A DNA stretch of 64,000 nt from Macrostomum lignano (lineage: Eukaryota): assembly GCA_002269645.1 (NCBI GenBank), contig NIVC01001416.1:83197-147196 (forward strand), written 5' to 3'. The position numbers and the translations under genes were made by a program. Position 1 is the first letter of the stretch; each line of letters begins with the position of its first letter. The notes under the pieces were generated by a model. It saw nothing but the letters and a program-made list of their open reading frames with translations. It did not search any database and was not told the origin of the DNA. Of the stretch, positions 9,393 to 54,400 are shown piece after piece.

Positions 9393-9776
9393 CAGAAGCG
9401 TCACCATGGATTTTATGGTGGGGCGTAGCCAAGAATTTTACACGTACATGTACACGACTTAATTCTCACATGTAAATTATTTTCAGAATCAGTGTTGTCA
9501 GCACGCATTTTAGCGCCGCAGGCACTCATTTTAGCGCCACAGGCACTTATTTTAGCGCCACAGGCACTCATTTTAGCGCTACAGGCACTCATTTTAGCGC
9601 TACAGGCACTCATTTTAGCGCTACAGGCACTCATTTTAGCGCTACAGGCACTCATTTTAGCGCCACAGGCACTCATTTTAGCGCCACAGGCACTCATTTT
9701 AGCGCCACAGGCACTTATTTTAGCGCCGCAGGCACTCATTTTAGCGCTACAGGCACTCATTTTAGAGCCCCGCCTG
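9393..9776. mobile_element. Diverged relative of the 28.7 kb element with a 21-bp internal array
   Basis: Shares the 5' end cgtc(a/g)ccatggattttatg...tagccaagaattttaca and the ttttagcgccacaggcactca repeat. Confidence 0.6.
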
Positions 9777-13800: not shown

Positions 13801-16800
13801 TCTGTCTCCCTCCGCGCACACATCTCTGGCCTTGCATGCAACTCCCCTGTCCTGCCCTCGCGTGGGTCCTTGTCTATACATAGCTACCGGACCCTACCTC
13901 TCTGTGCCTTGCTCGGAACTCTGTCCCAGGCCCCCCTTCACGCTTCTCTGTCCCGGGCTGCAACTGGCTGACACGCGCCTCTCTGTTCCCCTGCCTGCGT
14001 GGCTGCCTACCCCTGCACACTGCTCTCTGTCCCCTCCTCTCCGCGCCTCTCTATCATCCTATTCCTGCAGCTGACCATGCCGTTCAGCTCTGTCCACGCA
14101 CGGCTCCACCCCTGCCCGTGTCTCACTGTACCGCCCTGTGTGGCTCCCTTACCCAGCGCGTTTGCTCCCTATCTCCCTCCTGCTCCATATGTTTCTGTTC
14201 CCTCACACTACGCACCAGTGGCCAGCTCTCTGTCCATACACATCTCTGCTCCTCCACTCTATCCTCGCGTGGTCCTTGACTGTTCGCGTGCCCCTGCATA
14301 CCCTGCCTGCCTCTCTGTCCCCTGCAACTGGGGAGGGAGCTCTCTATCCTCTGTACGGCTCTCTCTGTGGGGTGTGTGTGACTCACACTGTCTCTCTGTC
14401 CTAGCATGCGCCTCTCTATCCGGCTCCTGCAGCAGGCTGTGTTATTCACATCTCTTTCCGCCCCACCCCTCTCTGCCCGTACACGCTCACTGTACAGGGC
14501 TGCGTCAGCATCGGGGTTAAAACTTCTCGCTCCCTATGCTTCAACAGTATAACAACCTAGTGGCTGGTTCTCTGTCCGCCCCACCCCTCTCTGCCCGTAC
14601 ACGCTCACTGTACAGGGCTGCGTCAACATCAGGGTTAAAACTTCTCGCTCCCTATACCCCCAAACCGTGTAGTGGCCTAGTATGGGCGCGACCTGGGTTC
14701 GATTTCGCTAGTTGAGATGTGGGTGAGAGAGGGGAAGAGGCTAGGTGGGGCAGGGCGTGAGGTATAGGGTGCCTGCGGGGTACGTATCGTTGACTACATA
14801 TCGGTGTACACACATATCGGGAGAGTGTACTAGGGAGAGTGTACTGGGGAGAGTGTACTTGGGAGAGTGTACTGAGGAGAGTGTACACTCGGGGTGCCTG
14901 CGGCATGGAAGAGTGTACACCCGGGTGCCTGCGGCTTGGGAGAGTGTACACTCGGGGTGCCTGCGGTTTGGGCGCCTGCTGCATACATATCGGGGTACAT
15001 ATCGGGAGGGTGTACATGTCGGTAGGGTGAGCATACATATCGGTACATGCCGGTAGGGTCGCCTGCGGCTGGGGAGGGTCGCCTGCGGCTGGATGGCGCT
15101 TGGCGCCACGCGCCTGCGGCGCGCGCGCGCCGAGCGCCGATATCGATACGCGTATCGATCACCTCGGGGCGCCAGCCAATGAGAGGCGAGGAGGGTTGAC
15201 ACCCACCCCACCTCCAAAACGCCCGGATCTGCCGGCCCTTAGTAGTGGGGATAATTGGCACAGCGGGAGGTCGAGAAAGTGTTGCGCAAGCAAAATTGAG
15301 AACAATAGGGCTGGGATCGGGAACAAAGGAAATGGAAATCGGGTGAAGAGTTGATTCGGGAGGTGATCAGTCACCCGAAAACTCCCACTTCCAGACCCTA
15401 AGCCTGGGAACAAAATCAGTGATCACTTACTGTTGCGGGCTCCTCTTCTTTGTCGTGCGCGTCTGTAGAACTCGTCTCCGTAGAGCGGTTCCTCCCGGGG
15501 TGGTCTTCTTGAAGTCTAGAGTCGGCCGAAGGTGAGAGCGTAACAATTAAATCGACGTCGCAGTATTTCTCGAACGCAAATCAATATAGGCCTTAAACTC
15601 AGTAATGAATATCAACGATGCGCCCTTATAACAAAATCAACTTTCTGTAATAACAACGAGGTCCTCCAAGAAGGGCGTCTTCTTCTAGATCTAACGGAAT
15701 CGGAGTCGTGTGCTCCTATCGGTTAATCTAGGATAACCAAAATCAATCAATCGATAATCCTCTAAGGGTATCGGAATCGGTCCGCAGATCCTATCCAATC
15801 CCTTAGGAAAATAGGAGGCCTCAAATTCAATGAACTCAGTCAAATCGACTGGACAGTAGCGGCCGGCAATAAATCGCTCTCAAAATCAATAACAAAGGCT
15901 CGAGCAACGGCTCACCAATTGGTTTATCTCTCTCTCAGAGATATAGCCTCGCTTAGCTGTTCCAGCAAGCTCCAAGACCTTTAGAGGCTGCTCCGAGTCT
16001 GAGATTTTTAGCTCGGATTTTAGCTTGTATTTATAGTAAAATTTTGGGGTAAACAGGTTATTTTGGGAAGGTGACTCATTTGCTTTTTGGAATTTTGACC
16101 TCTCGATAATTGAATAGAATACAACAGGTTTGCGCATCAATACCATATTTAGAATTCTATTTTTAGATGTTACATAAGATGATTACTCGTTGTTTTCGTG
16201 GTCTTCTAAAATAGTGTATGACAACTCGGAATTTTTAGATTCGCATTTTCGCATTTTTACGTTACTACTTATAGTAGTTTACTCTGTATCTTATTTGGAG
16301 ATCTGTACACTGGGATAATTTGGGAAAATCGAGAACAATCGAAAAGTAAACATTGGAGAAAAGGTGCCAATTGGGTGCGAAAACGAGAACAAAAGCGAGA
16401 GAAAATCCGGGAAATGTGATAATTGGGTGCGAAAAGGAGAACAAAAGAACCAAAAACGAGAACAATAGAAGCGGAGGTGGGGTTGGTGTCGCATGAGAAA
16501 TTTGGGGAGGAGAACAATAGCATAAGAAAGGTTGCGCAAGAGGGGTGGTGAGTCATCGATGAGTCATCGAGGGGAAAGAGAGGTCACAAGGCTTGCGTCA
16601 CCGTTTGGGAGTTTACTAAGGGTTGGGAGGCGGTGAGCGCACAAAGTACTGTGAGTAGGCACGGGAAGAAGGGGGGACAGCGCAGGAAAAACAGTCCAAA
16701 AGGAAAGAAAAAGAGGGATTTGGGGGAAAAGTACATAATAGATAGGCTAGAGCGCATAGGAAATAGAGTAGCGGGTGAGGGAGCAGAGGGGGATAGGGGC

Positions 16801-18137: not shown

Positions 18138-20237
18138 TCCGAGTCCCTTGGGATTGGCTCTCATGGGTATTACTTGCACTACAGAATCCCGGCCACATTT
18201 TGAGAACGCAAACCTGAAATGATGTGGCTTGAAGTGGTGACTGACACGAAATATATCAGACTGCCTTCCTTAAAACATTTAATGAGACATTGCCTTTCTG
18301 TTATGACTTTGTAAATCGACTTAGCATTTTAATCAATCTTGTGAATACACCCACAAGAGGTTTGAAAAGCTTTCAGATAGCTATCAGGTAGCTTTGTAGA
18401 TAAATCTACTAAAAGAGCCTTCCAAACAAATCTACTTTTATGCAAACACAAGAAACGAAAAAAAACGCTGAAACCTTTTCATATTAGACATAATCATAAT
18501 TTAAATTGAAGATCGGTTATTAAATTTTTATTGAATAGTATAAAATTTGGAATCAATGACAAGAAGCAGTTTTAAGTCTGATTCATTTTTAAAATCAACC
18601 AACGAAGTCGAATAGACAATATTTTTGAAGTCTTGCAGTTGTGCTCCTCAACTGTCGCTCTTGCCTGTCTTCTTGCCGATGTAGCAGACGTGCAAAAACA
18701 GAATTCTTCGATCAAATCTGAAAAGGTAAAAACGTAGGAGATTTCGAAATTTTGTTATTTACGAAATATCTCTGCATAAGGCAATTGAATAGCTTTTCAT
18801 TGACCATACTCATAAATAGTGATTATCCCATTCAAAAATAAATTCACACGGTTTTTCACTCTTGGGTTAAACTTAAGGACTACTAAAGTCCAACGGTGCA
18901 AGGGTAACTTCTCAGTGATCCTGGGTTCAAATCTCTCAAGGGTCTGTAGGGGTGATAATTACTAGCTTCTGAATGTGAGATTGAAGCGTTGAAGCGTTCT
19001 TGAAGCAGAGATTCGAACTTGGGGTAGGCAGTAACTTTAAATCAATGTGTCATGCTGTTGAAACATTCGAATAGCATTATTAGGAAGCTCTATGTATACT
19101 ACTTTCTGGTTTTATCTTTAGTAGTATAAGCGACCTCCTACTGATATGATAGACGGTACATGTAAAATTATATATTATTCTTATTTCAACGACATACATT
19201 CCAAAATAATTATATTTACTGTAGGCATGATTACATTGCAAGTAGCAATTGTTACTTTGAAGAAGGGCTTTGAGCAATTCCCCAAAATCAAAGACCACAG
19301 AAGGCACGCAGTGGTTCATTATGGGTTCAGTAGTGGTTCAGAACAATCCTTCTGTGGACCACAGAAGACCACAGAAGGCACCCATTCACCTGCCCCAGTA
19401 CGCAGGCATGCAATCACAGAGGGTGTAAAGAGGACTTGACTTTATCACCGTCCTAAAACTGACCTGACGATTTTCATTTAAGATTCAATTCAGACTACTG
19501 AGAAAAGTAGACAAATAAAGATTTGAGTTGTAAAATTCCTCAAAAAGCCATTAAAGAACATCCTGCGCACACTAAGCTTGGCGGGAGAGAACGGTGTGTG
19601 GCTGTGGCTGACTGACGACAGACATTTTAGCGTGTCACAGTCAAGAAGTACACAGAAACTAAGAGCATTCCTACAGCTCGCTCACCGAGACAATCCGTGC
19701 AGACTTCTGGCCGGAAGAATGTCAGCATTGGGCGCCCATCTGCGGCATTCCTCTCGAGCTTGAGGAAAACTTCCTGGATAGATTTTCGTGTAGCACATCT
19801 GTAGGCTGGCACCGGGACCTCTGGAAATCGGCGACCAGGCGGCTGATGGACATCTGGTCCTGACGGTTTTCTCTTGAGCAGCATCAGCTGCATCATTCTT
19901 AGCTGTCTCCGGCTGCTGGACTCGCACTGGCGCCTTGCAAAAGTGAAAATGGCGCGCCTCAGGCTGGTAGGTGCGCCACAGCAGACGGGTCTCGGCGTCG
20001 ACCAGCAAGCCGAAGTTCATGGGCGGGCGGCTGGGACCGACAAGCCAGCTTCTGCAGTGCCGGCAGGAATGGAAATCACGCTTTAGTCAATCGTGAAGCA
20101 TTCACATGTAAGGCGTATGACCCAACTATGACAGAAGAGAGTGTTTGAATTCATGTCACACGGATTTGGGTTTCGGCCGGAAGGGATGGGGCTGCCTCAC
20201 AATCCCACTTCAGGGAAATGGGGCCTATGGTTCTGGC

Positions 20238-21644
20238 GCCCCTGGTGCTAAAGCCCCTGGTGCTAAAGCCCCTGGTGCTAAAGCCCCTGGTGCTAAAGCC
20301 CCTGGTGCTAAAGCCCCTGGTGCTAAAGCCCCTGGTGCTAAAGCCCCTGGTGCTAAAGCCCCTGGTGCTAAAGCCCCTGGTGCTAAAGCCCCTGGTGCTA
20401 AAGCCCCTGGTGCTAAAGCCCCTGGTGCTAAAGCCCCTGGTGCTAAAGCCCCTGGTGCTAAAGCCCCTGGTGCTAAAGCCCCTGGTGCTAAAGCCCCTGG
20501 TGCTAAAGCCCCTGGTGCTAAAGCCCCTGGTGCTAAAGCCCCTGGTGCTAAAGCCCCTGGTGCTAAAGCCCCTGGTGCTAAAGCCCCTGGTGCTAAAGCC
20601 CCTGGTGCTAAAGCCCCTGGTGCTAAAGCCCCTGGTGCTAAAGCCCCTGGTGCTAAAGCCCCTGGTGCTAAAGCCCCTGGTGCTAAAGCCCCTGGTGCTA
20701 AAGCCCCTGGTGCTAAAGCCCCTGGTGCTAAAGCCCCTGGTGCTAAAGCCCCTGGTGCTAAAGCCCCTGGTGCTAAAGCCCCTGGTGCTAAAGCCCCTGG
20801 TGCTAAAGCCCCTGGTGCTAAAGCCCCTGGTGCTAAAGCCCCTGGTGCTAAAGCCCCTGGTGCTAAAGCCCCTGGTGCTAAAGCCCCTGGTGCTAAAGCC
20901 CCTGGTGCTAAAGCCCCTGGTGCTAAAGCCCCTGGTGCTAAAGCCCCTGGTGCTAAAGCCCCTGGTGCTAAAGCCCCTGGTGCTAAAGCCCCTGGTGCTA
21001 AAGCCCCTGGTGCTAAAGCCCCTGGTGCTAAAGCCCCTGGTGCTAAAGCCCCTGGTGCTAAAGCCCCTGGTGCTAAAGCCCCTGGTGCTAAAGCCCCTGG
21101 TGCTAAAGCCCCTGGTGCTAAAGCCCCTGGTGCTGAAGCCCCTGTTGCTAAAGCCCCTGTTGCTAAAGCCCCTGGTGCTAAAGCCCCTGGTGCTAAAGCC
21201 CCTGGTGCTAAAGCCCCTGGTGCTAAAGCCCCTGGTGCTAAAGCCCCTGGTGCTAAAGCCCCTGGTGCTAAAGCCCCTGGTGCTAAAGCCCCTGGTGCTA
21301 AAGCCCCTGGTGCTAAAGCCCCTGGTGCTAAAGCCCCTGGTGCTAAAGCCCCTGGTGCTAAAGCCCCTGGTGCTAAAGCCCCTGGTGCTAAAGCCCCTGG
21401 TGCTAAAGCCCCTGGTGCTAAAGCCCCTGGTGCTAAAGCCCCTGGTGCTAAAGCCCCTGGTGCTAAAGCCCCTGGTGCTAAAGCCCCTGGTGCTAAAGCC
21501 CCTGGTGCTAAAGCCCCTGGTGCTAAAGCCCCTGGTGCTAAAGCCCCTGGTGCTAAAGCCCCTGGTGCTAAAGCCCCTGGTGCTGAAGCCCCTGTTGCTA
21601 AAGCCCCTGTTGCTAAAGCCCCTGGTGCTAAAGCCCCTGGTGCT
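20238..21644. repeat. Near-perfect 15-bp array (gcccctggtgctaaa), about 94 units
   Basis: Only 6 variant units, in two identical 3-unit blocks 450 bp apart. Confidence 0.95.
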
Positions 21645-21880
21645 GGCGCTCCTTAGATGAGGAAGGCAACTTTTGAAGGCAACGAATACCTGACTTCCCA
21701 AACCTATCCATGCCTTGATGAATAAAGTTCAGCTTTCGTAGCTTTCAAAAACGCGAAACAAATCAAATGTCTCAACTGCAGCTACTCGTAGGGAATAACT
21801 GAATAGTCGCTAACTGAATAGGACTGGTATGTCCCAGTAGCTTCCCAGAGTGTCCCAGGCCACCTGCAACCAGAGCTCAC

Positions 21881-22220
21881 ACGCTGACGTTGATGCCGGA
21901 GTTGTCTCTGAGCCACTTGAACTTCCCTCCGTCTGCCTCGTCTCTGTACAGTCCGGTCCACGCCGCGTCTCCTTGAAACCTGCAGTCTCTGCACTGAGCT
22001 CTGTAGTCTTCTCTGAGTCTCCAGTTCCTTGCTGAGTAGTCCATCACCCAGTTCATCTCCGACTGAGATGTGATCCACAGCAGGTGAGCAGACGGGTCTC
22101 GTCTCTGACAGTCAGAAACTGCCGCTGTGAGGTTTCGTCCGTTGGATCCCTTGACCAGGAGGTAGCAGAAGCCATTGAATTGCAGCCAGTCTGCTGTCGC
22201 ACATGAACCTCTGTTTCCAT
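21881..22220 (-). CDS. C-type lectin domain, N-terminal exon
   Basis: CATADWLQFNGFCYLLV...A..DCQ...AHLLWITSQSEMNWV...AWTGLYRD..GGKFKWL matches the C-type lectin fold signature; cccacag acceptor (phase 1) and gt|gtgagc donor (phase 2). Confidence 0.8.
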
Positions 22221-25200
22221 CTGTGGGTAGGGCAGCCCCTGACTTATAGTCCCAAATTTTTGCCAAAATTATCATCCGATACAGAGACCTCCTACTGCCT
22301 GATAAATTTATAATGACTGCAAATATCAGTCGCTTTTAAGAAGGCCTGCAATCAATTTACTGAGTCAGAAGTAAGAAGAAGAGTAAGAAGTCAAGGAAAC
22401 TCAGTCAGTCAGTCACTGATATGTGATATAATTCCGACAAGTTAAAAATTTCGACATTGTGGAAGTCAAAAACGTTTGCCACAACTGCTCTGCCCTTCGA
22501 GTATTTATCTGCATCAATGATTATGCTCAGGTAAATATTGTTTAATAAGATGCATGCAGGAAAACCGGTGGCACCGCAGCAGCCGAGCACTCACTGGTCA
22601 GCTGATTTGATAAAGCCGTGATGACGTCATCAAAGCCGCCTGCCTTCTTCACAGCCACCCGCAGCTCATATTCCTGTCCAGACTGCAGGGAGCCGCAGGT
22701 GGCAGACGGAGTGGGTGAAGACGCGGTCGAGACTTCACCTGAGCCGACTCGCTTGCAGGTGAGCTGGTACGAGACGCCAGAAGTGCTGGATGGCTGCCAA
22801 GTCACGGAGATGGCGGTCTCATTGGAGCTGTACTGAGCTGAGCTGGGGTCAATGCCGAACAGCTCTGCAATGAAACGGACCCAATAGAAGCGAGCTGTGC
22901 CTCATATGAGAGAAGCTGCAATGATTTACTGAGCTCCAACTCACTGGTCAGCTGGATTGGCAGCCAGGTGACAACTTCATGGAAGCCGCCCTTCTTAGTG
23001 ACAGCCACACTCAGGTTATAGGCCTCTCCTGACTGCACATTGCTGAAGGTGGCACTCAGATACTTTGATGGAGGCAGAGATGTTGAATTCTCTGTGCTGA
23101 CTCGCCTGCAGGTCACCCGGTACAGAACTCCTTCAGTGATGGACGCCGCCCAAGTCAGGTGGATGGAAGTCTCCCTGACGCTTAAACTCACTAAGCTGGC
23201 GTCAATCGGGAAGAGCTCTGCGGTAGCGAGGTGGGTGGGCAGCTCCTGACTTTAAAGTCCCAATTTTTGTCTTATTATCATTTTACACCGGGACATGCCT
23301 GCCTGATAAATATCTAATGACTGCAAATGTTTGTTTTATAGCAAGTATAGAAATATAAGTGTTTCTCAAAATCAGTGAGCATTTCGAATCAATAATTTAT
23401 TTCATGTCGTGTGGTCTGTGGTGTGATATAATGTTAGCTAGTTAAACCAAAACTTGTTCTCAGTATTAGCAGCTACAAGAAAAAAACTTTAATGTGCAGT
23501 TTTCAAAACTGTATAAAATTGTAGACAAAAGTGGAAATGTTGCTGGAGACGTCATGAAAATTGGAAGGCTTTACTAACTCGAAGAATTCACCGTAGCTAA
23601 TGGAGCAGCGACTGCTAATGGAGAGCAAGCTCTGAAATCACTGTAAAGACGGTCTCTGACTGTTTTTACCCTGGTTGCCTCTCTGGTAGCTCGTCTAAGG
23701 GTTGTGCGCAATCCGATTGGCCTAGCTTCGGCTAGCCCAATAACTAAGGGTCCGCCCCGGAGGGGCTGTGCCCATGCTAAAAATAAACCCTATTCTTTTT
23801 TCTAACCAATAGAATTTCGGCCCTCGGCCTTGGTTTAGGGGGGGGGGGTGCCCGGAGTGAGTAGGTACTCTGGACTGCAGTGTGGCTAGGACGGAACTGA
23901 GCCCCCCGGTCGTACCCGCCCTGCAGGAAAGAAAATGACCAATTTACAAAGGTGCACGGTAGACCCAGTAGACTGCCAGCCCTGAGGCTGAGCCCTTTTT
24001 GGAGGCCTGCGTGGGTTCAGGTGCTCCTCCAGTTATGTTTTAGTCCTATTACAGTATTGGTTTTATCTAACCCCGGCCTATGTAGCCATCCAATCTTTCG
24101 GAGTAATGAGCTCTGCCCACTGCCCGGTCCACCCTGCTCTGTCCTTGGGTCCATCTACTGGCTCCTGCTGACGGTCCCTGCCCGCGTGTCTCTGGCTCTC
24201 ATCCTGACAGTGGATTGGTGTCCTGGGAAGGATGTTCGTCCCGTACCGGGGACAACCGGCTGAGTCCGGTGTCATCTTGCCCCTGGTGCCTCTTCCCGAC
24301 CCCTTGGCCTGGCCCCCAATAATGAGCTGGATAGGCGATGCCCTTGGGTTGGTAGCAATAGAGGTGTTGCGATATCCGCCTAGAGTCTCCCCCTCGGATA
24401 CAAGCCTTCCAGACTCGCTCCAATAGTTAGCCCTTTCCAAGACTTCTGGGTTTCCCCGCTCTTGGACGGCTTTAAGTAGTATATATCCAATTCTGTTTTA
24501 CGCGCACTCCCGAGGACTTGTCTGCTGGGGGGGGGGGTAGCCTGGGTGGACTCGGTCCTAGCACCGTCCCTGATTCCACTGTTGGTTTGGCGGTGTCTTG
24601 TACCGTAGGCTTGGGTCAACTTCGCCCTCCCGCGCTTTATGCCGGGCCAAATCTCCATCTCTTCGGGGTATCTCGGGCTCTAAAAACAGCTAATGCTGTG
24701 CCCCTGGCAGTGCCCCTCGCGGCAGAGCACTTCCATGTGGCTGATCCGCGGGTCCCCCTTAGGACCCTTTCGTTTAACAAACAAACAAAACTGTTTCGTT
24801 TCGAGTCACTGTTTCGAGGAAGCATAGTCGAAGGAATCGCAATGGATAAAAGCAGCGTGCAGGCTGACGGCATCTCATTTTGTAAGGCATGCGTGGAAGG
24901 CAAAATGCACAAAAAACCATTTGGGAAAGGTGAGAGTTCAATGTGCAACGAATTGGTGTCTCTGATTCACAGCGGTGCAAATAAAGGAAACCACATCGAT
25001 TGGAGCTGGCGTCGATGCCAACAGCTCTGCAATGAAACGGACCCAATAGACCACATCAAAGCAACCTCATGAGAGCAGCTGCAATCATTTAATGAGCTCT
25101 ATATCACTCGTCAGATGGATTGGCTGAGTGACACTGGACTGAGTGCACTTACGATTTATTTTCAAAAGGCTGATAAACTCCTCTAGTGATTTAATATCAA

Positions 25201-26186
25201 CCAAAGAAGCCTAGAGGTCACACATGGATGACTGAGTGTTGTAAATACTTTATAAAACATATCATTAAAAGGTAATTAATATTTTTGGAGCTCACTGGTC
25301 AAAGCTGTGCCATGAATGAAAGGTGCAGGCGGGAACCCAGTCTTGACGGGTCTCACTGTGACAGTGACAGAGGCTCCGGATGGCTGGCCTGTGCACACAG
25401 CGGTTGTGTCTGGCACTCTGCCAGCGCAGCTGACTTCATACTCGACTCCGACATCGGGAGAGGCCGCCCACCGGGCTCTGAAGCTCGTCTCCGTCACATC
25501 CGAGATGTGCACTCGTCCTGGGACTTTGTTGAGATCTGCAATTGTGTTGGGACTTGCTAAACTGATGTTTTAAAGTTTCGCGAGGTTTGGTACTTAAGCA
25601 GTATTAAATTAGCAACAATTTTTATTTTTAATAGTAACTGAATCATCTAATAATCAAATTAAGATTAGTTAGAGTCAAAATTCAAAATGAATTTATTCAG
25701 AAATCCAGGTGGCCAGGTGTGGCAGCCAATGGCGCACCCGAGGCTGCGTGCATTTTGCACTGAATGACCCGCACAGTTTTCATTCTCACATGTAATTCCA
25801 GAAAGATGGAATGCAGGGCTGAGTCTGCAGTTCCGAAGTCCAGCCTGAATGGAAAAGCTGTACTCAGTAGCTCCGTTGAGATCTCGAAATGTGAATGTCT
25901 CATCTGTAGTGTTGTGCTGCTGAGTGGGACAGCTGGGGCAGCTCAGTGTGTAAAAGTACCCTGTGATGCCACGGTCTGGTGGCAGCCAATCAACTGTTAT
26001 TGATGAATTTGTGGCAGAGCGAACAGCAGCCACTGTCACAGGATCCACCTGACCCGGCAACAGTTTTCCACACGACGTGCCTTGAGCAGCCGCCTCATCG
26101 CACAGCAGTAGAGCAGCTGCAGCAGCAACCAGAAGCAGCCTGTAGAAGCAGAAGAGAGACCGACCTCTGTCTGCTTGAGAACTCAT
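21881..26186 (-). CDS. Unit A1: signal peptide + 4 FN3 exons + C-type lectin exon (3' end uncertain)
   Basis: Exons 26186-25790, 25535-25296, 23217-22945, 22864-22595 and 22220-21881 join in frame through phase-1 junctions; they are paralogs of B exons 1, 2, 5 and 6 plus a unique lectin exon. Confidence 0.75.
22595..22864 (-). CDS. A1 FN3 exon (270 nt, paralog of B exons 3/4/6)
   Basis: ETAISVTWQP...LQSGQEYELRVAV; phase 1-1. Confidence 0.85.
22945..23217 (-). CDS. A1 FN3 exon (273 nt, paralog of B exon 5)
   Basis: ETSIHLTWAAS...VQSGEAYNLSVAV; phase 1-1. Confidence 0.85.
23440..24975 (+). mobile_element. Ty1/copia pol relic split by a ~1.15 kb insertion
   Basis: QNLFSV.AAT...VQF...GDVMKIGRLY (23440-23644) rejoins LFRGSIVEGI...FCKACVEGKMHKKPF...SLIHS (24806-24975), the GAG-pre-integrase/integrase start of copia elements. 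Confidence 0.7.
23645..24805. mobile_element. Unclassified GC-rich insertion inside the copia relic
   Basis: Flanked by the direct repeat tcactgt; 3' end has an (AAAC)n tract; no recognisable coding domain. Confidence 0.4.
25000..25125 (-). pseudogene. Relic of an extra FN3 exon-5/exon-6 junction in A1 intron 2
   Basis: Diverged copy of 22820-22960 (acceptor, short intron, donor region), truncated at the copia relic. Confidence 0.6.
25296..25535 (-). CDS. A1 exon 2, short FN3-like (240 nt)
   Basis: ORF 25276..25512; ttgcag acceptor and a|gtgagc donor. Confidence 0.85.
25790..26186 (-). CDS. A1 exon 1: signal peptide + FN3
   Basis: ORF 25665..26186, ATG at 26186, t|gtgaga donor. Confidence 0.85.
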
Positions 26187-26979
26187 TTAGTAGTTTTGTT
26201 TAATTCGTTTTTAAAACTCTACCGGGTAGTTAAGGTATATTCAGTCAGTAGATGTATGGCTTGCTTTGAAAACTTATTTTTTCAGCTCGACTTTCAGTAC
26301 TATTTATAGGCGATTAATGATTACCCATGACTAATGCTTTATCAGACTATTCGTAACTCACTCGTTTACCATGAGCTCGCTCTTATCTGTAGTTTTCTAC
26401 TGTATCATGCAACCTATGGCTATAGGCCTTGCCTTGTGTAGCGAAGCGTACGATTTGTACAGACAAACCCGTATATATGTATGAGTACATGTAGATTAAA
26501 TAGAAAATCTAGCTGGAAAAAGAGTCAGGACTCAGTACTCATAAAGTCAAGAAATTTCGAAAAAAACTGTTCTTATCGAGCTCGTGTTTTTTATCTGGAC
26601 CCGGATGAGTCCATACAGTATTTCACTGGTTAGCTGAGTTCATTTGAAAATTTTGAGTCTTCTTTTGCGGCATGCCTAAATGTATTCAGTTCAGAATTGA
26701 TAAGGCATGCATATCCGTTTTGTTTGTTTTTTTAAATATTGCATCGCAAACAAGAGAAAAATAGCAAATCTAAGGATTTTGTTAATCTAATTAGTTCCAA
26801 CATTTTCCGCTCAAGTTTGCTTGTTGATTTAGAAAACTTGTCAGAGTACAGGTATAGAGGTGGCACCTTCTCAGCACAATTAGTGCAAAGGAAACTGCCG
26901 CCCCCTCACCTCCGAAGCACAGCTAGCGACCATTGCAACGCCCCTCGTATGGCACCCTTTGCAAGGCGCCCCCCCAATG

Positions 26980-28355
26980 TTACCCCCAGTGTGTTGCCCC
27001 CAGTGTGTTGCCCCCAGTGTGTTGCCCCCAGTGTGTTGCCCCCAGTGTGTTGCCCCCAGTGTGTGTTGCCCCCAATGTGCTGCCCCCAGTGTGTGTTGCC
27101 CCCAGTGTGTTGCCCCCCCCAATGTGTTGCCCCCCAACGTGTTGCCCCCAGTGTTTTCCCCCAGTGTGTTGCCCCCAGTGTGTTGCCCCCCGTGTGTTGC
27201 CCCCTAGTGTGTTGCCCCCAGTGTGTTGCCCGCAGTGTGTTGCCCCCAGTGTGTTGCCCGCAGTGTGTTGCCCCCAGTGTGTTGCCCCCAGTGTGTTGCC
27301 CGCAGTGTGTTGCCCCAGTGTGTTGCCCGCAGTGTGTTGCCCGCAGTGTGTTGCCCCCAGTGTGTTGCCCCCCAGTGTGTTGCCCCCAGTGTGTTGCCCC
27401 CAGTGTGTTGCCCCCAGTGTGTTGCCCCCAGTGTGTTGCCCGCAGTGTGTTGCCCGCAGTGTGTTGCCCCCAGTGTGTTGCCCCCCAGTGTGTTGCCCGC
27501 AGTGTGTTGCCCCCAGTGTGTTGCCCGCAGTGTGTTGCCCCAGTGTGTTGCCCCCCAGTGTGTTGCCCCCAGTGTGTTGCCCCCCAGTGTGTTGCCCCCA
27601 GTGTGTTGCCCCCCAGTGTGTTGCCCCCAGTGTGTTGCCCCCAGTGTGTTGCCCCCAGTGTGTTGCCCCCAGTGTGTTGCCCCCAGTGTGTTGCCCCCAG
27701 TGTGTTGCCCCCAGTGTGTTGCCCCCAGTGTGTTGCCCCCCAGTGTGTTGCCCCCCGTGTGTTGCCCCCAGTGTGTTGCCCCAGTGTGTTGCCCCCAGTG
27801 TGTTGCCCCCAGTGTGTTGCCCCAGTGTGTTGCCCCCCGTGTGTTGCCCCCTAGTGTGTTGCCCCCAGTGTGTTGCCCGCAGTGTGTTGCCCCCAGTGTG
27901 TTGCCCGCAGTGTGTTGCCCCCAGTGTGTTGCCCCCCAGTGTGTTGCCCGCAGTGTGTTGCCCCCAGTGTGTTGCCCGCAGTGTGTTGCCCGCAGTGTGT
28001 TGCCCCCAGTGTGTTGCCCCCAGTGTGTTGCCCCCAGTGTGTTGCCCCCAGTGTGTTGCCCCCAGTGTGTTGCCCCCAGTGTGTTGCCCCCAGTGTGTTG
28101 CCCCCAGTGTGTTGCCCCCAGTGTGTTGCCCCCAGTGTGTTGCCCCCAGTGTGTTGCTCCCAGTGTGTTGCCCCCAGTGTGTTGCCCCCCAGTGTGTTGC
28201 CCCCAGTGTGTTGCCCCCAGTGTGTTGCCCCCAGTGTGTTGCCCCCAGTGTGTTGCCCCCAGTGTGTTGCCCCCAGTGTGTTGCCCCCAGTGTGTTGCCC
28301 CCAGTGTGTTGCCCCCCAGTGTGTTGCCCCCAGTGTGTTGCCCCCAGTGTGTTGC
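26980..28355. repeat. ~14-bp minisatellite (gtgtgttgccccca) with variable C-run
   Basis: Unit length varies 13-15 bp, so reading frames shift repeatedly. Confidence 0.95.
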
Positions 28356-28662
28356 CTCATATATCTCATTGTTTTTATTTACCTTCGAATTATTTGTAAT
28401 CGATCTTTCCCCTGAGGAGAATTGTAGAGAGTATTGCAGGGTTTCAGGGTTGCTATTGTACAGCATGTATGACATACTTTTCACTCGCTCTCTGCCCCTC
28501 CCTTTTATTCCCAGTAATTTACCATTAGCGATAGTTAATTATATTTAATAAATCCTAAGAGGCTTCGTCAACTCTCATTCAAATCTCTCTGAGCTTTTTG
28601 AATTTAAACTACGACTTTATAGGTAAGAACTTTGGGATGATTTTACATTGCAACCTGTGCTT

Positions 28663-30552
28663 CAGGGGCGTCGCCATGGATTTTATGATGGTTAGGGGCG
28701 GACTTAGCCAAGAATTTTACATGACTAAATTCCTAAATTACTTCGGTAATCAGTGCTTTTAGCAATCATTATTGCGCCGCAGACATTCGTTTTGGCGCCG
28801 CAGGCAGTCACTTACACATGTATTGGCACCGCAGGCAGACACTTATTTTGGCGCCGCAGGCACTCATTTTGGCGCCGCAGACACTCGTTTTGGCGCCGCA
28901 GACAGGCACTCATTCTGGCGCCGCAGACAGGCACTCATTCTGGCGCCGCAGGTAGGCACTCATTTTGGCGCCGCAGGCAGGCACTCATTCTGGCGCCGCA
29001 GGTAGGCATTCAATCTGGCGCCGCAGGCAGGCACTCATTCTGGCGCCGCAGGTAGGCACTCATTCTGGCCCCGCAGGTAGGCACTCATTCTAGCGCTGCA
29101 GACAGGCACTCATTTTGGCGCCGCAGGCAGGCACTCATTCTGGCGCCGCAGGTAGGCACTCATTTTGGCGCCGCAGGTAGGCACTCATTCTGGCCCCGCA
29201 GGCAGGCACTCATTCTAGCGCTGCAGACAGGCACTCATTTTGGCGCCGCAGGCAGGCATTCAATCTGGCGCCGCAGGTAGGCATTCATTCTGGCGCCGCA
29301 GGTAGGCATTCAATCTGGCGCCGCAGGTAGGCACTCATTCTAGCGCTGCAGACAGGCACTCATTTTGGCGCCGCAGGCAGGCACTCATTCTGGCGCCGCA
29401 GGTAGGCACTCATTTTGGCGCCGCAGGCAGGCACTCATTCTGGCGCCGCAGGTAGGCACTCATTCTGGCCCCGCAGGCAGGCACTCATTCTGGCGCCGCA
29501 GGTAGGCACTCATTCTGGCCCCGCAGGCAGGCACTCATTCTAGCGCTGCAGACAGGCACTCATTTTGGCGCCGCAGGCAGGCACTCATTTTGGCGCCGCA
29601 GGCAGGCACTCATTCTGGCGCCGCAGGTAGGCATTCAATCTGGCGCCGCAGGCAGGCACTCATTCTGGCGCCGCAGGTAGGCACTCATTCTGGCCCCGCA
29701 GGTAGGCACTCATTCTAGCGCTGCAGACAGGCACTCATTTTGGCGCCGCAGGCAGGCACTCATTCTGGCGCCGCAGGTAGGCACTCATTTTGGCGCCGCA
29801 GGCAGGCACTCATTCTGGCGCCGCAGGTAGGCACTCATTCTGGCCCCGCAGGCAGGCACTCATTCTAGCGCTGCAGACAGGCACTCATTTTGGCGCCGCA
29901 GGCAGGCATTCAATCTGGCGCCGCAGGTAGGCATTCATTCTGGCGCCGCAGGTAGGCATTCAATCTGGCGCCGCAGGTAGGCACTCATTCTAGCGCTGCA
30001 GACAGGCACTCATTTTGGCGCCGCAGGCAGGCACTCATTCTGGCGCCGCAGGTAGGCACTCATTTTGGCGCCGCAGGCAGGCACTCATTCTGGCGCCGCA
30101 GGTAGGCACTCATTCTGGCCCCGCAGGCAGGCACTCATTCTAGCGCTGCAGACAGGCACTCATTTTGGCGCCGCAGGCAGGCATTCAATCTGGCGCCGCA
30201 GGTAGGCATTCATTCTGGCGCCGCAGGTAGGCATTCAATCTGGCGCCGCAGGTAGGCACTCATTCTGGCGCCGCAGACAGGCACTCATTTTGGCGCCGCA
30301 GGCAGGCACTCATTCTGGCGCCGCAGGTAGGCATTCAATCTGGCGCCGCAGGTAGGCACTCATTCTGGCGCCGCAGACAGGCATTCATTTTGGGGCCGCA
30401 GGTAGGCACTCATTCTGGCGCCGCAGGCAGGCTCTCGATTGATTTTGGCGCCAACAGAGTCGCTATACCTTGGCGCCTTGAAGAAAAATTATTGCTTTCT
30501 AAAACAAAACAAAACATTGACATGCCCCCATGCCCCCTACGCGACGCCCCTG
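28663..30552. mobile_element. hAT-like TIR element carrying a ~1.6 kb internal minisatellite
   Basis: Perfect 12-bp TIR CAGGGGCGTCGC / GCGACGCCCCTG; no clean TSD (ctgtgctt vs tcgtgcgc). Confidence 0.65.
28850..30430. repeat. 25-bp minisatellite (ggcgccgcaggyaggcactcattyt) with higher-order variant blocks
   Basis: Direct reading; lies inside the 28663-30552 element. Confidence 0.95.
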
Positions 30553-48400: not shown

Positions 48401-51400
48401 TTGGGAAGGCCAGTGTGTTTGCATTGCTTTCGACAGCTTTTATTTGAAATTTTGTTGTCTTCAGGTCGGATGACGCAAAGTTTCCAAATACGCAATATTT
48501 CTTGCAGACAAAAATAATGAAGTTGTGAGTCAGTTTATCTTGTCTTGACAAAGTTTCATATCAGAATAGCCTGTAGTTGAGAAGCTTTGAAAAGTAAATA
48601 ATCTGTAGTGTTGAATTGGCTGCTTCAGAAGTTTATATATGCTTCTCGCTATCAAAGAATCGCAATTATAAAATCGGTGAGGTAATCATGGACTACTCAA
48701 GTAGAGAGACGAGAAAGTTTATTTATTGGAATTTTTAGAAGACAGGCTATGAATATCGATAGAGCTGTATGAAAGGCAAGTCATATTAAAAGATAAACAT
48801 TAGGTCTGCCTCTTTTTAGAAACAGTAACCGTTTTTGTGCTGAATAAATGAAAACCCCCATTCTTCCCAATGTCTTTTTCGGTAGAACTCGCCCCCTAAA
48901 ACGCAGTTTCCCGTATCTACTTGAGTAGTTGTAGGGGGCAATATTTTTGAAATCTTGACACACTGGTGCAACATGGACTCCAACATTTAAAAATATTTAT
49001 TTAGGTCTTCTAACGAACCTCTATGATATCATTCAAAAGTTGTGAAATAAGGAAACTGCGTTACAACTGACAGCATGCCAAGTCATAAAAATCCCTTTAT
49101 CTGAATCAGAGATACGGCACAACTAAAATACGCACTGATGGTTAATATGTGATGAGAATGATTATAAGATTCAAATTATTTACTCAAATTCTCAGTTGTT
49201 AACATCTATTTAAACAAAATTTTGTAAACAAGCTGTCTTTCTTAAAAATTAATAGTATGATTAATTAAGTATGAATATTTTAAGTTGTCAATGATAACAT
49301 TTTTTTTGTCTATAAGTATGACTAAATTTTCATAATAATTAACATAAATGCAGGGTAATTCTTGATTTTCACTTTAAAATATGTCAGGTGTGTCATAAGC
49401 AAAGTTATGTCACTGCATGCTTCTGTCGAAAGTACATGTAGACATGTGTACATGCACTTGTGGGTAGTCCAGCAGTACCAGTGCATTTTGTTTATAGCCC
49501 ACAATCTTTCGCAAGAGTCAGTTAAGCAGCTTTAGTATCGCTCTATTTATCAGCTTGGATACTCTGCAGCAGAAGTAGGGGAGGATCTCGGGACCCACAC
49601 TGCTGGACAACTGCTTGATTTGCAGGACAATTCACAGGTGCTTTCAAGACTTTTCTGATCCTTCGGGGTTCGAATTCGGAGATGCCACGAGATCTGACCG
49701 GCCAGTGTTCAACCAGGACAACAAAAAGTCATCCATGTCATCAGCGATCTGGTCTGGAAAGACCCGCGACCGCGACAGTCCGCCAAGAAAATAGCTTTAG
49801 TTGTCTAAAATAGCCTAGCATAAATAATAGTTTATTAATTAATAATACTTTACTAATTGACTACCGACAGATCAGCCGCAGCTATTGCGCAGCGCATCTG
49901 AAGGCTGCGTACGGCTGTTCAGTCCAAGGACTGGGGGGGGGGGTCGCCACACACCCTCAATTACCACAGCTAATGCTGGCACCCATTTTACAGCTGAGTG
50001 AACTGAAGCTGAAGGACACAAATTGTTCTTAGTGGGTCGAGAATCGAACCCCCGATCTTTGAGTCGTAAGTCCGATGCTTTAACTACTTGGCTACAACCT
50101 AGCATATAAAGCTTAGAGATTAGGCAAGATACTCCAAAGACAGACAAAGCATATAAAAAGAATATTTTGGTTAAATTACTCTTCTGTCATTAATTTAGTT
50201 CTCCAGAATTCGGAATGTTGCATGTAATAACATAAATAATTTTAAGTATGTAGATTTAACAGGTTAAAACCTTAACAAAATATACATGCACCAAATTTAG
50301 AGCTACCGTTGCACAAAGCTAGTGCAGTTTTCTACGCTATAAACATAGCGAAGTACACGGAAGCATTAGGCCAGTCTTCAAATAATTTTGCAGTATTTTC
50401 TAGTGTTAGGTCCTGATACAACGGTAACTTTAATAGTGGTCCTTGCTTAGACAGTGCGGTAATGACCAACTGTTTTACCAGTAAACACTAAGTTGGAGGC
50501 AGTATAAAAATTTACTACTACTTCTAGCTAATTTAAGCAGTTGGACTATTGCGTCATCGCTCAGTTTTTTTCAGGTAAATTTATCAAATTTATAGATTTT
50601 ATTCTACAGATATCCATTAAAACTTGCAGAGCTCTCTGGCATTGACGCCAGCTCAGCTCAGTACAGCTCCAATGAGACCGCTATCTCTGTGACTTGGCAG
50701 CCATCCGGCACTTCTGACGTCTCGTACCAGCTCACCTGCAAGCGAGTCGGCTCAGGTGAAGTCTGGAATGCGTCTTCACCCACTCCGTCTGGCACCTGCG
50801 GCTCCCTGCAGTCTGGACAGGCCTATGAGCTGCGGGTGGCTGTGCAGAAGGCGGGCTTTGATGACGTCATCACGTCTTTATCCAACCAGCTGACCAGTGA
50901 GTGCTCAGCTGCTGCGGTGCCACAGTTTTACCTGTATGAATCTTGTATCTAGCATCTAGCATGTATATGGCATAATCATTGATGCAGTTCAATACTTGAG
51001 GGCCAGACCGGCTTTGTGGCAAACTCGTCTGACTTTCACGCCAAAGGCTGCTCACTGTCGAAACTTCACTACATGTATGGAAAAGTGTTACTGGGTTCTT
51101 TTTTTCCTTATCTTATACACTCCATCGGTATTATCCTTCTTATTGCTTATACATTCATAAGCAGCCACCTTTCAAGCTGGGAGTACACCCACAGAAGAAG
51201 ACAAATCTTTAGAAGGATTGTTAAAAAGTCCATAAGTATTAAAACTTCATTGCAGCATATTAAACTGCAATATGAAGGTTTTAATATTTATACAAAATAG
51301 ACATAGTAGGGCCTAACTTCTAAGGTACGATCTCTTTTCGTGTTAAAGCTTTTGTTTTAAATGATAAAAATTTTAAATTGGCGCTAAAATAATGTTAAAA

Positions 51401-54400
51401 TACCGTCTTAGAAACAGTTTCATAGCTTTGAAAATTTCTTCGTACAATATCAATTGGCCTATGAAACTTGGAGTGAATCAGTGAATTTGATTAGTCACTT
51501 GTCCCTAACAAAAATAACACTAACAAAAGTTTATTCGCTCCCTACAACAACTGTGAAATTGCGTGCATTCTAGCATAGAAATAAGATATTAGTTTTTCGA
51601 TTTTGATCACAACATGTTATATACCAGGGGTAGATAACACAAAAGCAATAGAAAAACGACTGGGGAAAAAGCCTTCCATCAAGAATAAAAAAACCAAGCA
51701 AACTAATCATTTTGAATAGACAGTATAAGAGTCTGTGATGGTCTGAACCACGCATAATATAATGTAATTAGACAGCTAAATGTCTGTAGGTTAATGCCGT
51801 GTGCCCTTTTCATGCCTTCATAATCGCAGAATTGTGTCAATCACTACATCCAGTTTCTCGGATTTCATAATTCAAGATTTACAATTTTCTTCTATTTGCT
51901 CAGTGCTCATTGGTTGGGAGAATCGTCACGTGACTGAAACCTGACCAATTGGCTCAAAGCATGCATGGATTTTTCTCATGCCAGAGCAGCCGAGCTCAAT
52001 TAACCTTGAGCTCCGTGCACGAAAATTAAGCCTGAAGTTTGTTGTGCAATTTTTGCCCATTAGGGTCCAAGCCCTCCCAAGGCCCAGAGTGTGCAGTGAG
52101 AAAGTCGGGGCTGCTGTACATCCTGTGTGAGTGAGCTGGCTCAGGGCTCAGCGGAGCTGGCATGACTGCTCAGGGGAACTGGCATGACTGCTCAGGGTAA
52201 CTGTCATGACTGCTCAGGGCTCAGCGGAGCTGGCATGACTGCTCAGGGCTCAGCGGAGCTGGCATGACTGCTCAGGGCTCAGCGGAGCTGGCATGACTGC
52301 TCAGGGCTCAGCGGAGCTGGCATGACTGCTCAGGGCTCAGCGGAGCTGGCATGACTGCTCAGGGCTCAGCGGAGCTGGCATGACTGCTCAGGGCTCAGCG
52401 GAGCTGGCATGACTGCTCAGGGCTCAGCGGAGCTGGCATGACTGCTCAGGGCTCAGCGGAGCTGGCATGACTGCTCAGGGCTCAGCGGAGCTGGCATGAC
52501 TGCTCAGGGCTCAGCGGAGCTGGCATGACTGCTCAGGGCTCAGCGGAGCTGGCATGACTGCTCAGGGCTCAGCGGAGCTGGCATGACTGCTCAGGGCTCA
52601 GTGGAGCTGGCATGACTGCTCAGGGCTCAGTGGAGCTGGCATGACTGCTCAGGGCTCAGCGGAGCTGGCATGACTGCTCAGGGCTCAGCGGAGCTGGCAT
52701 GACTGCTCAGGGCTCAGAGGAGCTGGCATGACTGCTCAGGGCGAGCGCCCAGTGCCCGGCCTGTGAACTCACTGACACTATTTGTAGACACAAAATGCTC
52801 ACTCATTTTGAGCTGCATCTATATTTCTGCGTGCTCAAAAGCAACTGATATTTAGGGTAAGAAATTTAGCAGACAGGAATGTCTGTATCAGATGATAATT
52901 TGACAGTAATTGGGACTTTTAAGTCAGGAGCTGCCCACCCACCTCGCAAATGCAGCGCTCTTCCCGATCGACGCCAGCTCAGTGAGTTTCACCATCACAG
53001 AGACTTCCATCCACCTGACTTGGGCGGCGTCCATCACTGAAGGAGTTCTGTACCGGGTGACGTACAGGCGAGTCAGCACAGGGGATTCTTCATCTCTGCC
53101 TCCATCACAGTATCTGAATGCCGGCTTCAGCAATCTGCAGTCAGGAGAAGCCTACAACCTGAGTGTGGCTGTCACTAAGCAGGGCGGCTTCGATGAAGTT
53201 GTCACCTGGCTGCCAATCCAGCTGACCAGTGAGTTGGAGCTCAGCAAATGATTGCAGCTGCTCTGATGAGGCACAGCTCGCTTCTATTGGGTCCGTTTCA
53301 TTGCAGAGCTGTTCGGCATTGACGCCAGCTCAGCTCAGTATAGCTCCAATGAGACCGCCATCTCTGTGACTTGGCAGCCATCCAGAACTTCTGGCGTCTC
53401 GTACCAGCTCACCTGCAAGCGAGTCGGCTCAGGTGAAGTCTCGACCGCGTCTTCACCCACTCCGTCTGCCACCTGCGGCTCCCTGCAGTCTGGACAGGAA
53501 TATGAGCTGCGGGTGGTTGTGCAGAAGACGGGCGGCTTTGATGACGTCATCACGGCTCTGTCCAATCAGCTGACCAGTGAGTGCTGCTTTTGTCACATCT
53601 TTTATATTATCGTATTCTTATATCAACAATTTTTGAATATGTGCTTCATCTAGTGTTCGCATCTCACGTATGTTGAAGCTTCAACTGCAACTTGATGATG
53701 CATCTTTTTATTGATTGTTGTATCAAATTTTGCAAATAAATATCTATAAGTTCAGCTCACCTTATCTCACAATTCGTTTTGAATTTTTTGGTTCCTGAGA
53801 GTCAAATGACTCGGGTTAGATTTTGTGTCATTTGGATAATAACAGAAATCGCTAACACCCCAATGGCAAGGAACTTTTGAACTCTCCGTTGTAGTGGGAC
53901 TTATCAGTCGTATTCTACGGATTCTTCAGTATTTAAAGGCCTGAAACTGAATTAGAAAGATAGATTATAATCAAATTTAAGTTCTTAATAGACGATCGCA
54001 AGACCCTGGACATGGGCTTGGGTCTTAAGGTGGCTTAATTAGTTTATCGACTTAAATTTAAGTTAAATTTTTTGAAGCAAAATCTATTTTATACAATTAC
54101 TTTCTATAGTCTTAAAAATGGTTAAAGCCTATATTTTGATTCAATGCTTTCTCACTCAGAACCAAGACTCACTCAGAGTCTTTCAATGCGAGATTCCTGA
54201 TATGTATGTGATTAAGGATTATGGACCACTTCTAGTGGTCCTGGCTTGGAAAGTCAGGGCGGCTGTGCACCCAGTGTGAGCGCGTGTCTGGGTACATGTC
54301 TCGTCGCCTCTTCGCTCTTGCTCGCTTGCGTCTTCTTGCGACTAAAAGAACTCGCACCTCACCAATTCCCTCGCACCCGCCAACCGCCGCAGAGCTGTAC

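Follow-up and report, generated by a model that had tools for sequence, protein, structure and literature searches.

Intron-mediated exon shuffling of phase-1 extracellular modules, as set out by Gilbert and constrained by the phase-compatibility rule of Patthy, is the classical route by which domains pass between genes, and as a rule it can only be deduced much later, from the arrangement of domains and the phases of introns. Young chimeric genes are known from Drosophila, where jingwei and Sdic go back to segmental duplication or recombination, in the case of jingwei by retroposition. Here we analyse a stretch of 64 kilobases (kb) from the flatworm Macrostomum lignano (contig NIVC01001416.1, assembly GCA_002269645.1; hereafter the window), in which three paralogous genes with fibronectin type III (FN3) exons, A1, A2 and B, are found. 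In A1, annotated as BOX15_Mlig022912g1 (protein P0003), the FN3 exons are followed by two exons, e1 and e2, for a C-type lectin-like domain, and the intron in front of e1 is that of an FN3 array. We consider A1 to be a chimeric gene produced by a rearrangement at the DNA level, with its right-hand breakpoint at the extreme 3′ end of an FN3-array intron, and give this reading a probability of roughly 0.7.

The locus fetched for the annotated gene is identical to window positions 36186-8648, and the protein read from the minus-strand exons 26186-22595 matches M. lignano proteins at up to 99% identity. A Pfam scan of P0003 returned FN3 matches only (fn3, PF00041, above the gathering score; 84 bits, expectation (E) value 8.5e-24, four stretches), and two types of FN3 exon that are central to the analysis, fn5 and fn6, scored 53.6 bits by themselves. 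A literature search for the three gene identifiers found no publication.

The intron ahead of the lectin-like exons

As the preliminary description had proposed for about 100 nucleotides (nt), the sequence preceding the lectin exon is homologous to the ends of the introns that precede fn5-type exons in A1 and B. We found that 118 nt (22223-22340, minus strand) resemble these intron ends, with 79.6% identity over 103 nt to 23231-23328 before the fn5-type exon of A1 (three-way MAFFT alignment and BLASTN, E 1.6e-16) and 75.6% over 119 nt to 52834-52942 before that of B (BLASTN of the whole window, E 2.3e-14). The A1 fn6-to-lectin intron (22594-22221, 374 nt) was also compared directly with the fn6-to-fn5 intron of B (2062 nt). 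Here 22340-22223 again matched the B intron end (76% over 119 nt, E 2e-15), and the first 136 nt (22594-22459) matched 50896-51039, the opening stretch of the intron that follows the second fn6 exon of B, with 76% identity over 145 aligned nt (E 2e-23) and the last exon base as the first aligned base. This 5′ part, 22459-22594, lies as well inside an 86% match of 22459-22870 to 51039-50624. Both matches are colinear with the B intron and keep its order. The A1 intron is an FN3-array intron at both ends, now leading into foreign sequence, and homology at both ends is stronger evidence than the 3′ end alone.

The intron-end motif occurs in exactly three copies in the window (BLASTN). It was not found in a 26.7-kb locus of the same lectin family on contig NIVC01000479.1 (L001), and in two further loci that carry A1-type genes (L003 and L004, described below) it was found only before fn5 and before the lectin exon. 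The ~118-nt intron end might be thought an independent element, for instance a small mobile element or a conserved module with a role in splicing or regulation, that says nothing about recombination; it is short, lies directly at acceptors, and its identity of 76-83% is below the ~90% of the surrounding A1/B blocks. We regard this as very improbable, given three copies only in 64 kb, none in L001, and an opposite end of the same intron that is also FN3-array-like, with the ends in the order seen in B. A self-comparison of the window, made with no separate repeat scan, showed no other copy and no reverse-strand copy.

Homology to the FN3 introns terminates at ...ACCCAC and ends at 22223, 2 nt ahead of the A1 acceptor AG (22222-22221), while the B intron continues 15 nt beyond this point to its own AG. 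Homology to lectin genes begins at the first base of the A1 exon (ATGGAAAC vs ACGGAAAT), possibly at the G of the AG. The breakpoint is located to within ~2 nt, inside an intron, and is traceable to the recipient gene. In the junction alignment, an AG at this position is present in neither parental type, and it is unchanged in all three genomic copies. The earlier statements that homology stops about 14 nt short of the original acceptor, and that a new phase-1 AG leads into lectin sequence, are borne out by these alignments. The fn6 exon ends in A, which with AT from e1 gives Asn, and the lectin exon (22220-21881) is entered in phase 1; the junction in the P0003 coding sequence reads ...ALSNQLT-N-GNRGSC..., with the fn6 end and the e1 start both in phase 1.

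The annotated coding sequence joins fn6 (end 22595) to e1 (22220-21881) and e1 to e2 (20051-19685), so that in the annotation the lectin exon is indeed spliced to the FN3 exons. The GenBank annotation of M. lignano is derived from RNA-seq assemblies (PMC5730564), which supports use of the fn6-lectin junction in the annotated coding sequence.

The junction is present elsewhere in the genome. P0003 shares a 90% cluster with P0033, P0034 and two UniProt models, and LSNQLTNG(N/H)RGSC is found in 5/5 of these proteins. The loci of P0033 and P0034, L003 (NIVC01000905.1) and L004 (NIVC01000551.1), are colinear with the window from 35.6 to 8.4 kb at 92-98% identity. In both, the fn6-to-lectin intron is likewise 374 nt long (12 and 7 substitutions, respectively), and e1 differs from the window copy by 2 (L003) and 7 (L004) bases. 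The lectin exons have open frames in all copies, and each comparison, on small counts, gives less non-synonymous than synonymous change; for the window versus L003 the proportions were pN 0.004 and 0.011 against pS 0.014 and 0.080 in e1 and e2. The junction has been kept as coding sequence across copies, and its presence in three diverged copies indicates that it is older than the triplication of the region. Such a triplication fits the known neopolyploidy of M. lignano (PMC10733133). The earlier claim that only one paralog has the lectin part is right within the window, where A2 and B are without it, and wrong for the genome, since NIVC01000905.1 and NIVC01000551.1 have the same junction.

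A mis-assembly of a repeat-rich polyploid genome, or a dead lectin fragment wrongly spliced in by the annotation, could also yield such a junction. The assembly is known to be redundant and repeat-rich (PMC5730564), Pfam misses the domain, and one gene model, P0001, skips the exon. Yet the same junction lies on three separate contigs that differ by 1-7%, and LSNQLTNG(N/H)RGSC is also contained in two UniProt entries of a different accession pattern, perhaps from another annotation. With the open frame in all copies, the deficit of non-synonymous changes and a prediction that e1 and e2 together fold as a complete C-type lectin-like domain, an artefact is extremely unlikely. P0001 (UniRef A0A1I8HN17) was considered as a lectin-less A1 paralogue in the ancestral state and was rejected as a chimeric gene model. 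Its first 393 residues equal P0033, and the rest are exons of a downstream gene, P0037, reached via a frame-shifted FN3 piece; it looks like a prediction artefact or a read-through transcript.

The lectin-like module and its relatives

Exon e1 (22220-21881) is a single open frame with motifs resembling a C-type lectin-like domain, of which it encodes the N-terminal two thirds. Pfam Lectin_C gave no match for e1, for e1 with e2, for P0003 or for a six-domain protein, P0009. A phmmer search of the PDB with e1 gave 18 matches at E ≤10, and 18/18 are C-type lectin-like domains (LY75 6.6e-06, CD302 0.018). The profile of the family, made from a 13-sequence alignment, gave 82 PDB matches at E ≤0.01; all 60 among the matches listed are C-type lectin-like, the best being LY75 (6e-13) and CD302 (2.4e-07). 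The AlphaFold2 model of e1 with e2 had a predicted local distance difference test (pLDDT) of 89.4 and a predicted template modelling score (pTM) of 0.85. The 50 PDB matches listed by Foldseek for this model were all C-type lectin-like domains, among them DCIR, Mincle, dectin-2 and CEL-I, with probability 1.0 and template modelling (TM) scores of 0.56-0.81. The identification of the captured domain as a divergent C-type lectin-like domain holds at the fold level only. The preliminary description had spoken of a C-type lectin exon, which is upheld for the fold by the PDB profile and the predicted structure, with no match from Pfam Lectin_C and with the EPN/QPD and WND motifs not seen.

A HMMER search of 1.84 billion representatives returned only 11 relatives of the lectin domain. 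Those looked up are mostly M. lignano proteins, named C-type lectin domain-containing in UniProt and often with ≥6 tandem domains. The locus brings to light a family of C-type lectin-like domains in Macrostomum that is specific to the lineage and goes unseen by Pfam. In the family alignment C7, C19, C38 and C152 are invariant and probably represent C0, C0′, C1 and C4, and the motif AAW(T/I)GL is present. The C2 and C3 positions show no cysteine, and an invariant CxxC (C77, C80) stands in an insertion instead. Neither the EPN/QPD tripeptide nor the WND motif was seen in A1 or in the family alignment, where the region reads W-x-x-G-x-P...R-T/S...WHFCK. These absent calcium and sugar motifs argue against classical lectin activity, and on its sequence the domain should be called lectin-like rather than a demonstrated lectin.

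Canonical patterns for the C-terminal third of the domain (WxD..C, C...WxD..C...C) had no match in the window, and a frame-shifted read-through just past e1 revealed no remaining domain piece. The pattern search was empty because such motifs do not occur in the family and the missing third is encoded 1.8 kb further downstream, at 20051-19929. Homologue searches by word index, made once with e1 and once with the lectin part and its tail, returned nothing or a single match and were false negatives: neither P0003 nor P0005 came up, although P0003 includes both queries exactly and P0005 is nearly identical to them, so that negatives of this search are not reliable. The intron inside the domain is filled by a 60-nt minisatellite (20238-21644; ~23 copies, 99% identity, open in two frames) whose array length varies among the three genomic copies, and a 75%-similar satellite lies in L001 at 22032-22709. 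The tail of e2 (19685-19930) encodes CPSAAW...CY...ECRRW..., resembling the decayed start of another lectin-like domain, and the P0005 tail does likewise. This might fit a donor exon in which e2 of one domain ran on into e1 of the following one, a weak indication (BLASTP E 0.86).

P0005 is the product of BOX15_Mlig027029g1 in L001 and consists of a signal peptide, three FN3 domains, lectin-like domains, a tail and a transmembrane segment; P0010 and P0018 are related models. Five copies of e1 and e2 are present in L001, in two neighbouring genes. A1 e1 is 88-89% identical to each of these where BLAST aligns them (293-316 nt) and 81-85% identical when all 340 nt are counted, with third codon positions 68-76% and first and second positions 85-92% identical. 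All five copies and A1 e1 are about equally distant (81-90%), so that e1 cannot identify the donor copy and only e2 discriminates. A1 e2 matches only the e2 of the terminal P0005 domain (L001 15821-15946, 81% of nt), and its tail matches the P0005 tail (BLASTP 44%, E 9e-24). By this comparison the terminal lectin domain of Mlig027029g1 is the nearest relative found of the captured domain. The search for a donor lectin gene, which the preliminary description had called for, led to a donor-like family, in which the closest locus reached, L001, is only 81-89% identical. No usable result on the timing of the event was obtained from sequence identities.

The domain-internal intron lies in the same codon in L001 and A1, with the same AGCGT/GTGAG donor; it is 85 nt long in L001 and 1.8 kb in A1, the latter owing to the 60-nt minisatellite. 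Since this intron was kept, the captured piece moved as genomic DNA and not as a cDNA or retrocopy. Upstream of the e1 homologues, L001 has a coding Thr/Ser-rich linker and not the A1 intron. The first lectin domain of P0005 has its acceptor 20 nt further upstream, in an unrelated 1.07-kb intron, and at the A1 junction position all five e1 copies of L001 are without an intron. As P0005 shows, the order of FN3 domains followed by this domain already existed with a different junction, and the earlier suggestion of a new FN3-lectin architecture has to be given up, as the distant paralog Mlig027029g1 already combines FN3 with lectin-like domains.

The intron position bears on gene conversion, by which a lectin exon that always had an intron here would have had only the intron sequence overwritten from the neighbouring fn6-to-fn5 intron. 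Mosaic identities in the FN3 exons suggest conversion in the array: the fn6 exon of A1 is 86-94% identical to the three in B, and an fn5 exon has diverged further than the introns on either side of it. Such conversion needs flanking homology, however, and the lectin exon has none with fn5; with an intron at this position in 0/5 of the L001 e1 copies, we judge it highly improbable.

The linker in L001 also offers a possible, if rather doubtful, source for the acceptor. The AG might then have been inherited from neither parent and made by a microhomology join of the C/A-rich end of the FN3 intron (CCCACCCAC) with linker codons. The partner in this join, equally doubtful, would be the ACC/ACA/CCx-rich Thr/Pro linker codons that precede each lectin domain of tandem-lectin genes. 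Two L001 copies have linker codons with an in-phase CAG 14 nt before the first Cys codon; in A1 the distance is 17 nt. If such a join took place, Thr/Pro-rich interdomain linkers would be ready-made cryptic acceptors, with a pyrimidine-rich run and a phase-1 AG, and domain capture through intronic breaks may be recurrent in this neopolyploid genome.

In the reading that we favour, a single illegitimate recombination at the DNA level would have brought a Mlig027029-like terminal lectin module, from its first bases on, directly behind the final bases of an fn6-to-fn5 intron. The upstream part would be an A/B-type gene, with signal peptide, two FN3 exons, fn5- and fn6-type exons and an fn6-to-fn5 intron shortened in the middle; the downstream part would be the 3′-terminal module of a Macrostomum-specific lectin-domain gene, namely e1, a phase-2 intron and e2 with its tail. 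The FN3 intron would provide the donor, the pyrimidine-rich run before the acceptor and presumably the branch region, and the AG assembled at the junction would serve as a phase-1 acceptor that preserves the lectin reading frame. The pyrimidine-rich 3′ end of the FN3 intron and the phase-1 AG at the join would be what made the chimera viable. Divergence is alike on both sides of the junction (20-24% in the intron ends, 24-32% at third codon positions of e1), and this similar neutral divergence is compatible with one event. We infer a single event as the origin and the lectin part as the incomer. The comparisons support the view that the lectin sequence is foreign to A/B-type genes, and the captured piece, as judged from its exons, is at least two exons with an intron that form a new 3′ end of the gene and not an inserted cassette. 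The preliminary description is right in essence as to a lectin-like module grafted on by recombination in an FN3-array intron, and is corrected in that not a single exon but at least two exons with an intron form the new 3′ end. Of its FN3 cassette overwritten by lectin, the foreign lectin sequence stands, while the direction is not readable from a single junction.

The direction could indeed be the reverse. A resident lectin gene built like Mlig027029, from FN3 exons, lectin domains and a tail, would then have had its 5′ half replaced by a neighbour's A/B-type copy, and the incoming FN3 piece, from the signal-peptide codons to the end of the fn6-to-fn5 intron, would have left the same junction. 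P0003 and P0005 are colinear from signal peptide through tail, with ~45% protein identity in the FN3 part and ~85% in the lectin part (own count). The similarity of A1 to A2 and B starts only in the signal-peptide codons, with unalignable DNA upstream, and the 12.4 kb that separate the junction from the onset of A2 homology (22220-9769) have no counterpart in A2 or B and contain segments colinear with L001 355-1121. Against this, A2 and B are mutually unalignable upstream of the start codon too, so that a boundary of this kind is not peculiar to A1. The surroundings of A1 are a cluster of A/B-type genes, and L001 adjoins a tandem-lectin gene. Moreover, A1 e2 resembles the third, terminal domain of the L001 gene and not the one that follows FN3 there, and past e2 there is no colinear synteny with L001. 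We consider the reverse direction unlikely. For the 12.4 kb as a whole, only scattered or opposite-orientation matches to L001 were found. Three colinear matches of 70-83% pair 11739-15246 with L001 355-1121, upstream of the tandem-lectin gene and in opposite orientation to the lectin exons; they are either a dispersed repeat or a hint that more of this stretch derives from the lectin locus.

Several points weigh against our preferred reading of A1 as an FN3 gene that received a lectin module. Only one junction was found, with no second breakpoint located at the far side of the rearranged piece, so that the exchange may have gone either way. Among the loci reached, the most donor-like copy, in L001, is only 81-89% identical, and the true donor was not found there. 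The colinearity of P0003 with P0005 leaves room for a shared ancestral FN3-lectin gene whose 5′ half was later replaced. Splicing across the junction is as given by the annotation, and in one other model, P0001, fn6 is linked to exons of the following gene with the lectin exons passed over.

Gene products and other features of the window

Coordinates of the genes, exons and introns are collected in Table 1.

Table 1. Positions of the junction, of the parts of gene A1 and of their counterparts in the window
Feature	Position	Strand	Remarks
Gene A1	26186-18648	minus	FN3 exons, then lectin-like module
Gene A2	~8700-3000	minus	without fn5 and fn6 exons; transmembrane segment
Gene B	45068 to beyond 62123	plus	exons fn6, fn6, fn5, fn6, more FN3 exons, transmembrane segment
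fn6-type FN3 exon of A1	22595..22864	minus	last FN3 exon before the junction, ends in phase 1; P0003 residues 305-393 map exactly
5′ part of fn6-to-lectin intron	22459..22594	minus	homologous to B 50896-51039
3′ part of fn6-to-lectin intron	22223..22340	minus	fn5-type intron end; conserved in L003 and L004
Acceptor AG at breakpoint	22221..22222	minus	CT in FN3 introns; GG or CA in L001 lectin copies
Lectin exon e1	21881..22220	minus	340 nt, enters in phase 1, leaves in phase 2; P0003 residues 394-507
Intron inside lectin domain	20052..21880	minus	phase 2, donor GTGAGC, enlarged by 60-nt minisatellite
Lectin exon e2 and tail	19685..20051	minus	completes domain (SWLVGPS...FHFCK), then degenerate tail; P0003 residues 508-629
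Last coding exon of A1	18716-18651, with stop to 18648	minus	FDRRIL...KSDS
Intron-end reference copy 1	23218..23328	minus	before A1 fn5-type exon 23217-22945
Intron-end reference copy 2	52834..52957	plus	before B fn5-type exon (start 52958); has 15 nt and AG absent from lectin copy
5′ end of B fn6-to-fn5 intron	50896..51039	plus	counterpart of 22594-22459

A2- and B-type genes encode type I membrane proteins. P0037, the A2-type gene product downstream of the A1-type gene in L003, has 940 amino acids, a transmembrane segment and a short Tyr-containing tail. Read from its sequence, A1 has a signal peptide, four FN3 domains, one lectin-like domain and a short tail, with no transmembrane segment seen, and its product is probably a secreted derivative of the transmembrane FN3 protein encoded by A2, B and P0037. 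UniRef names several relatives 'Protein-tyrosine-phosphatase', and A2/B-type proteins are without a phosphatase domain. In P0037 no protein tyrosine phosphatase catalytic domain was found: the tail after the transmembrane segment has 55 residues, and the precomputed Pfam matches are of FN3 type or faint only. This cytoplasmic tail carries YATV-x9-YVEI, with the spacing of an immunoreceptor tyrosine-based activation motif (ITAM).

Similarity among A1, A2 and B (26100-26420, 8575-8890, 44850-45170) begins abruptly within the signal-peptide codons; no two of the genes can be aligned over the first ~12 codons or anywhere in the DNA upstream. A2 (3003-8699) runs from the second FN3 exon directly into the repeat-rich 3′ part, without fn5 or fn6, and its counterpart on NIVC01000905.1 (P0037, L003 20229-25728) has fn6, fn6, fn5 and fn6, which shows that the number of exons in the FN3 array varies between genomic copies. 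A relic unit of fn5 end, short intron and fn6 start is stranded in an A1 intron at 25003-25124 (81-83% identical to 22840-22961 and 53212-53331) and looks like the footprint of a deletion within the FN3 array.

The A1 intron between the second FN3 exon and fn5 has an insertion of ~1.2 kb (23644-24964) in the window copy only, not in L003 or L004. It holds a transposon-like piece (24256-24753), 94% and 77% identical to L001 18151-18763 in opposite orientation. The fn5 exon (22945-23217) is 7% diverged among the three copies, compared with 4-5% and 6-8% for the flanking introns, and its pN is at least as high as its pS between copies (0.082 vs 0.050; 0.072 vs 0.065), whereas the fn6 and lectin exons have pN < pS. 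This pattern suggests diversifying selection or conversion from other FN3 repeats.

The window is also rich in minisatellites with periods of ~20-70 nt, several of them common to paralogous genes and some open in several frames. They lie at 592-1145, at 2650-3010 and 62420-63030, at 9398-9768 and 28762-30452, and at 26883-28538. Further places are 43437-44126, 52139-52742, 55493-56000 and 6890-7460, 59480-60920, and 63656-64000.

Comparison with described systems

The A1 locus is a useful worked example, with a recognisable recipient intron, a breakpoint placed within ~2 nt and an identifiable donor-like family, and, the flatworm being a transgenic model, it is open to experiment. The locus illustrates a way in which an FN3 protein with a transmembrane segment may be turned into an apparently secreted protein of FN3 and lectin-like domains. 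Our understanding of exon shuffling is unchanged by it; the process is well known, and A1 adds a clear case from a gene family specific to this lineage.

Its closest counterpart in the same genome, Mlig027029g1, shares with A1 the domain order, the lectin subfamily (e1 88%, e2 81% of nt), the position of the internal intron and a homologous degenerate tail. It differs in FN3 domains that are only ~45% identical in protein, in a non-homologous FN3-to-lectin junction, and in having three lectin-like domains and a transmembrane segment, compared with one domain and no transmembrane segment seen on reading in A1. The mannose-receptor family (DEC-205/LY75, MRC1) and CD302, which gave the best PDB sequence matches, appear to share with the Macrostomum domain the long-form N-terminal Cys pair and a WIGL-type core. 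The Macrostomum domain, unlike these, is without the canonical C2-C3 pair, EPN/QPD and WND, has an inserted QCxDC and ends in WHFCK. The partners of the domain in the mannose-receptor family are fibronectin type II modules, whereas the partner in A1 is type III.

Like jingwei and Sdic, A1 would unite a 5′ segment of one gene with a 3′ segment of a second, and was then kept and duplicated. Unlike in jingwei, which arose by retroposition, the captured part of A1 keeps its intron, indicative of an event at the DNA level. With classical exon shuffling, A1 has in common the intronic breakpoint, the coincidence of domain border and exon border and a frame-keeping phase-1 junction, and both FN3 and the C-type lectin-like domain are typical shuffled extracellular modules. 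Yet A1 contains no symmetric 1-1 cassette, as e1 leaves in phase 2 and the module runs via e2 and the tail to the stop codon, and by its exon structure the A1 event would be a replacement of the 3′ end of a gene, or a gene fusion. It also departs from the classical cases in that both ends of the recipient intron can still be recognised, something rarely observed.

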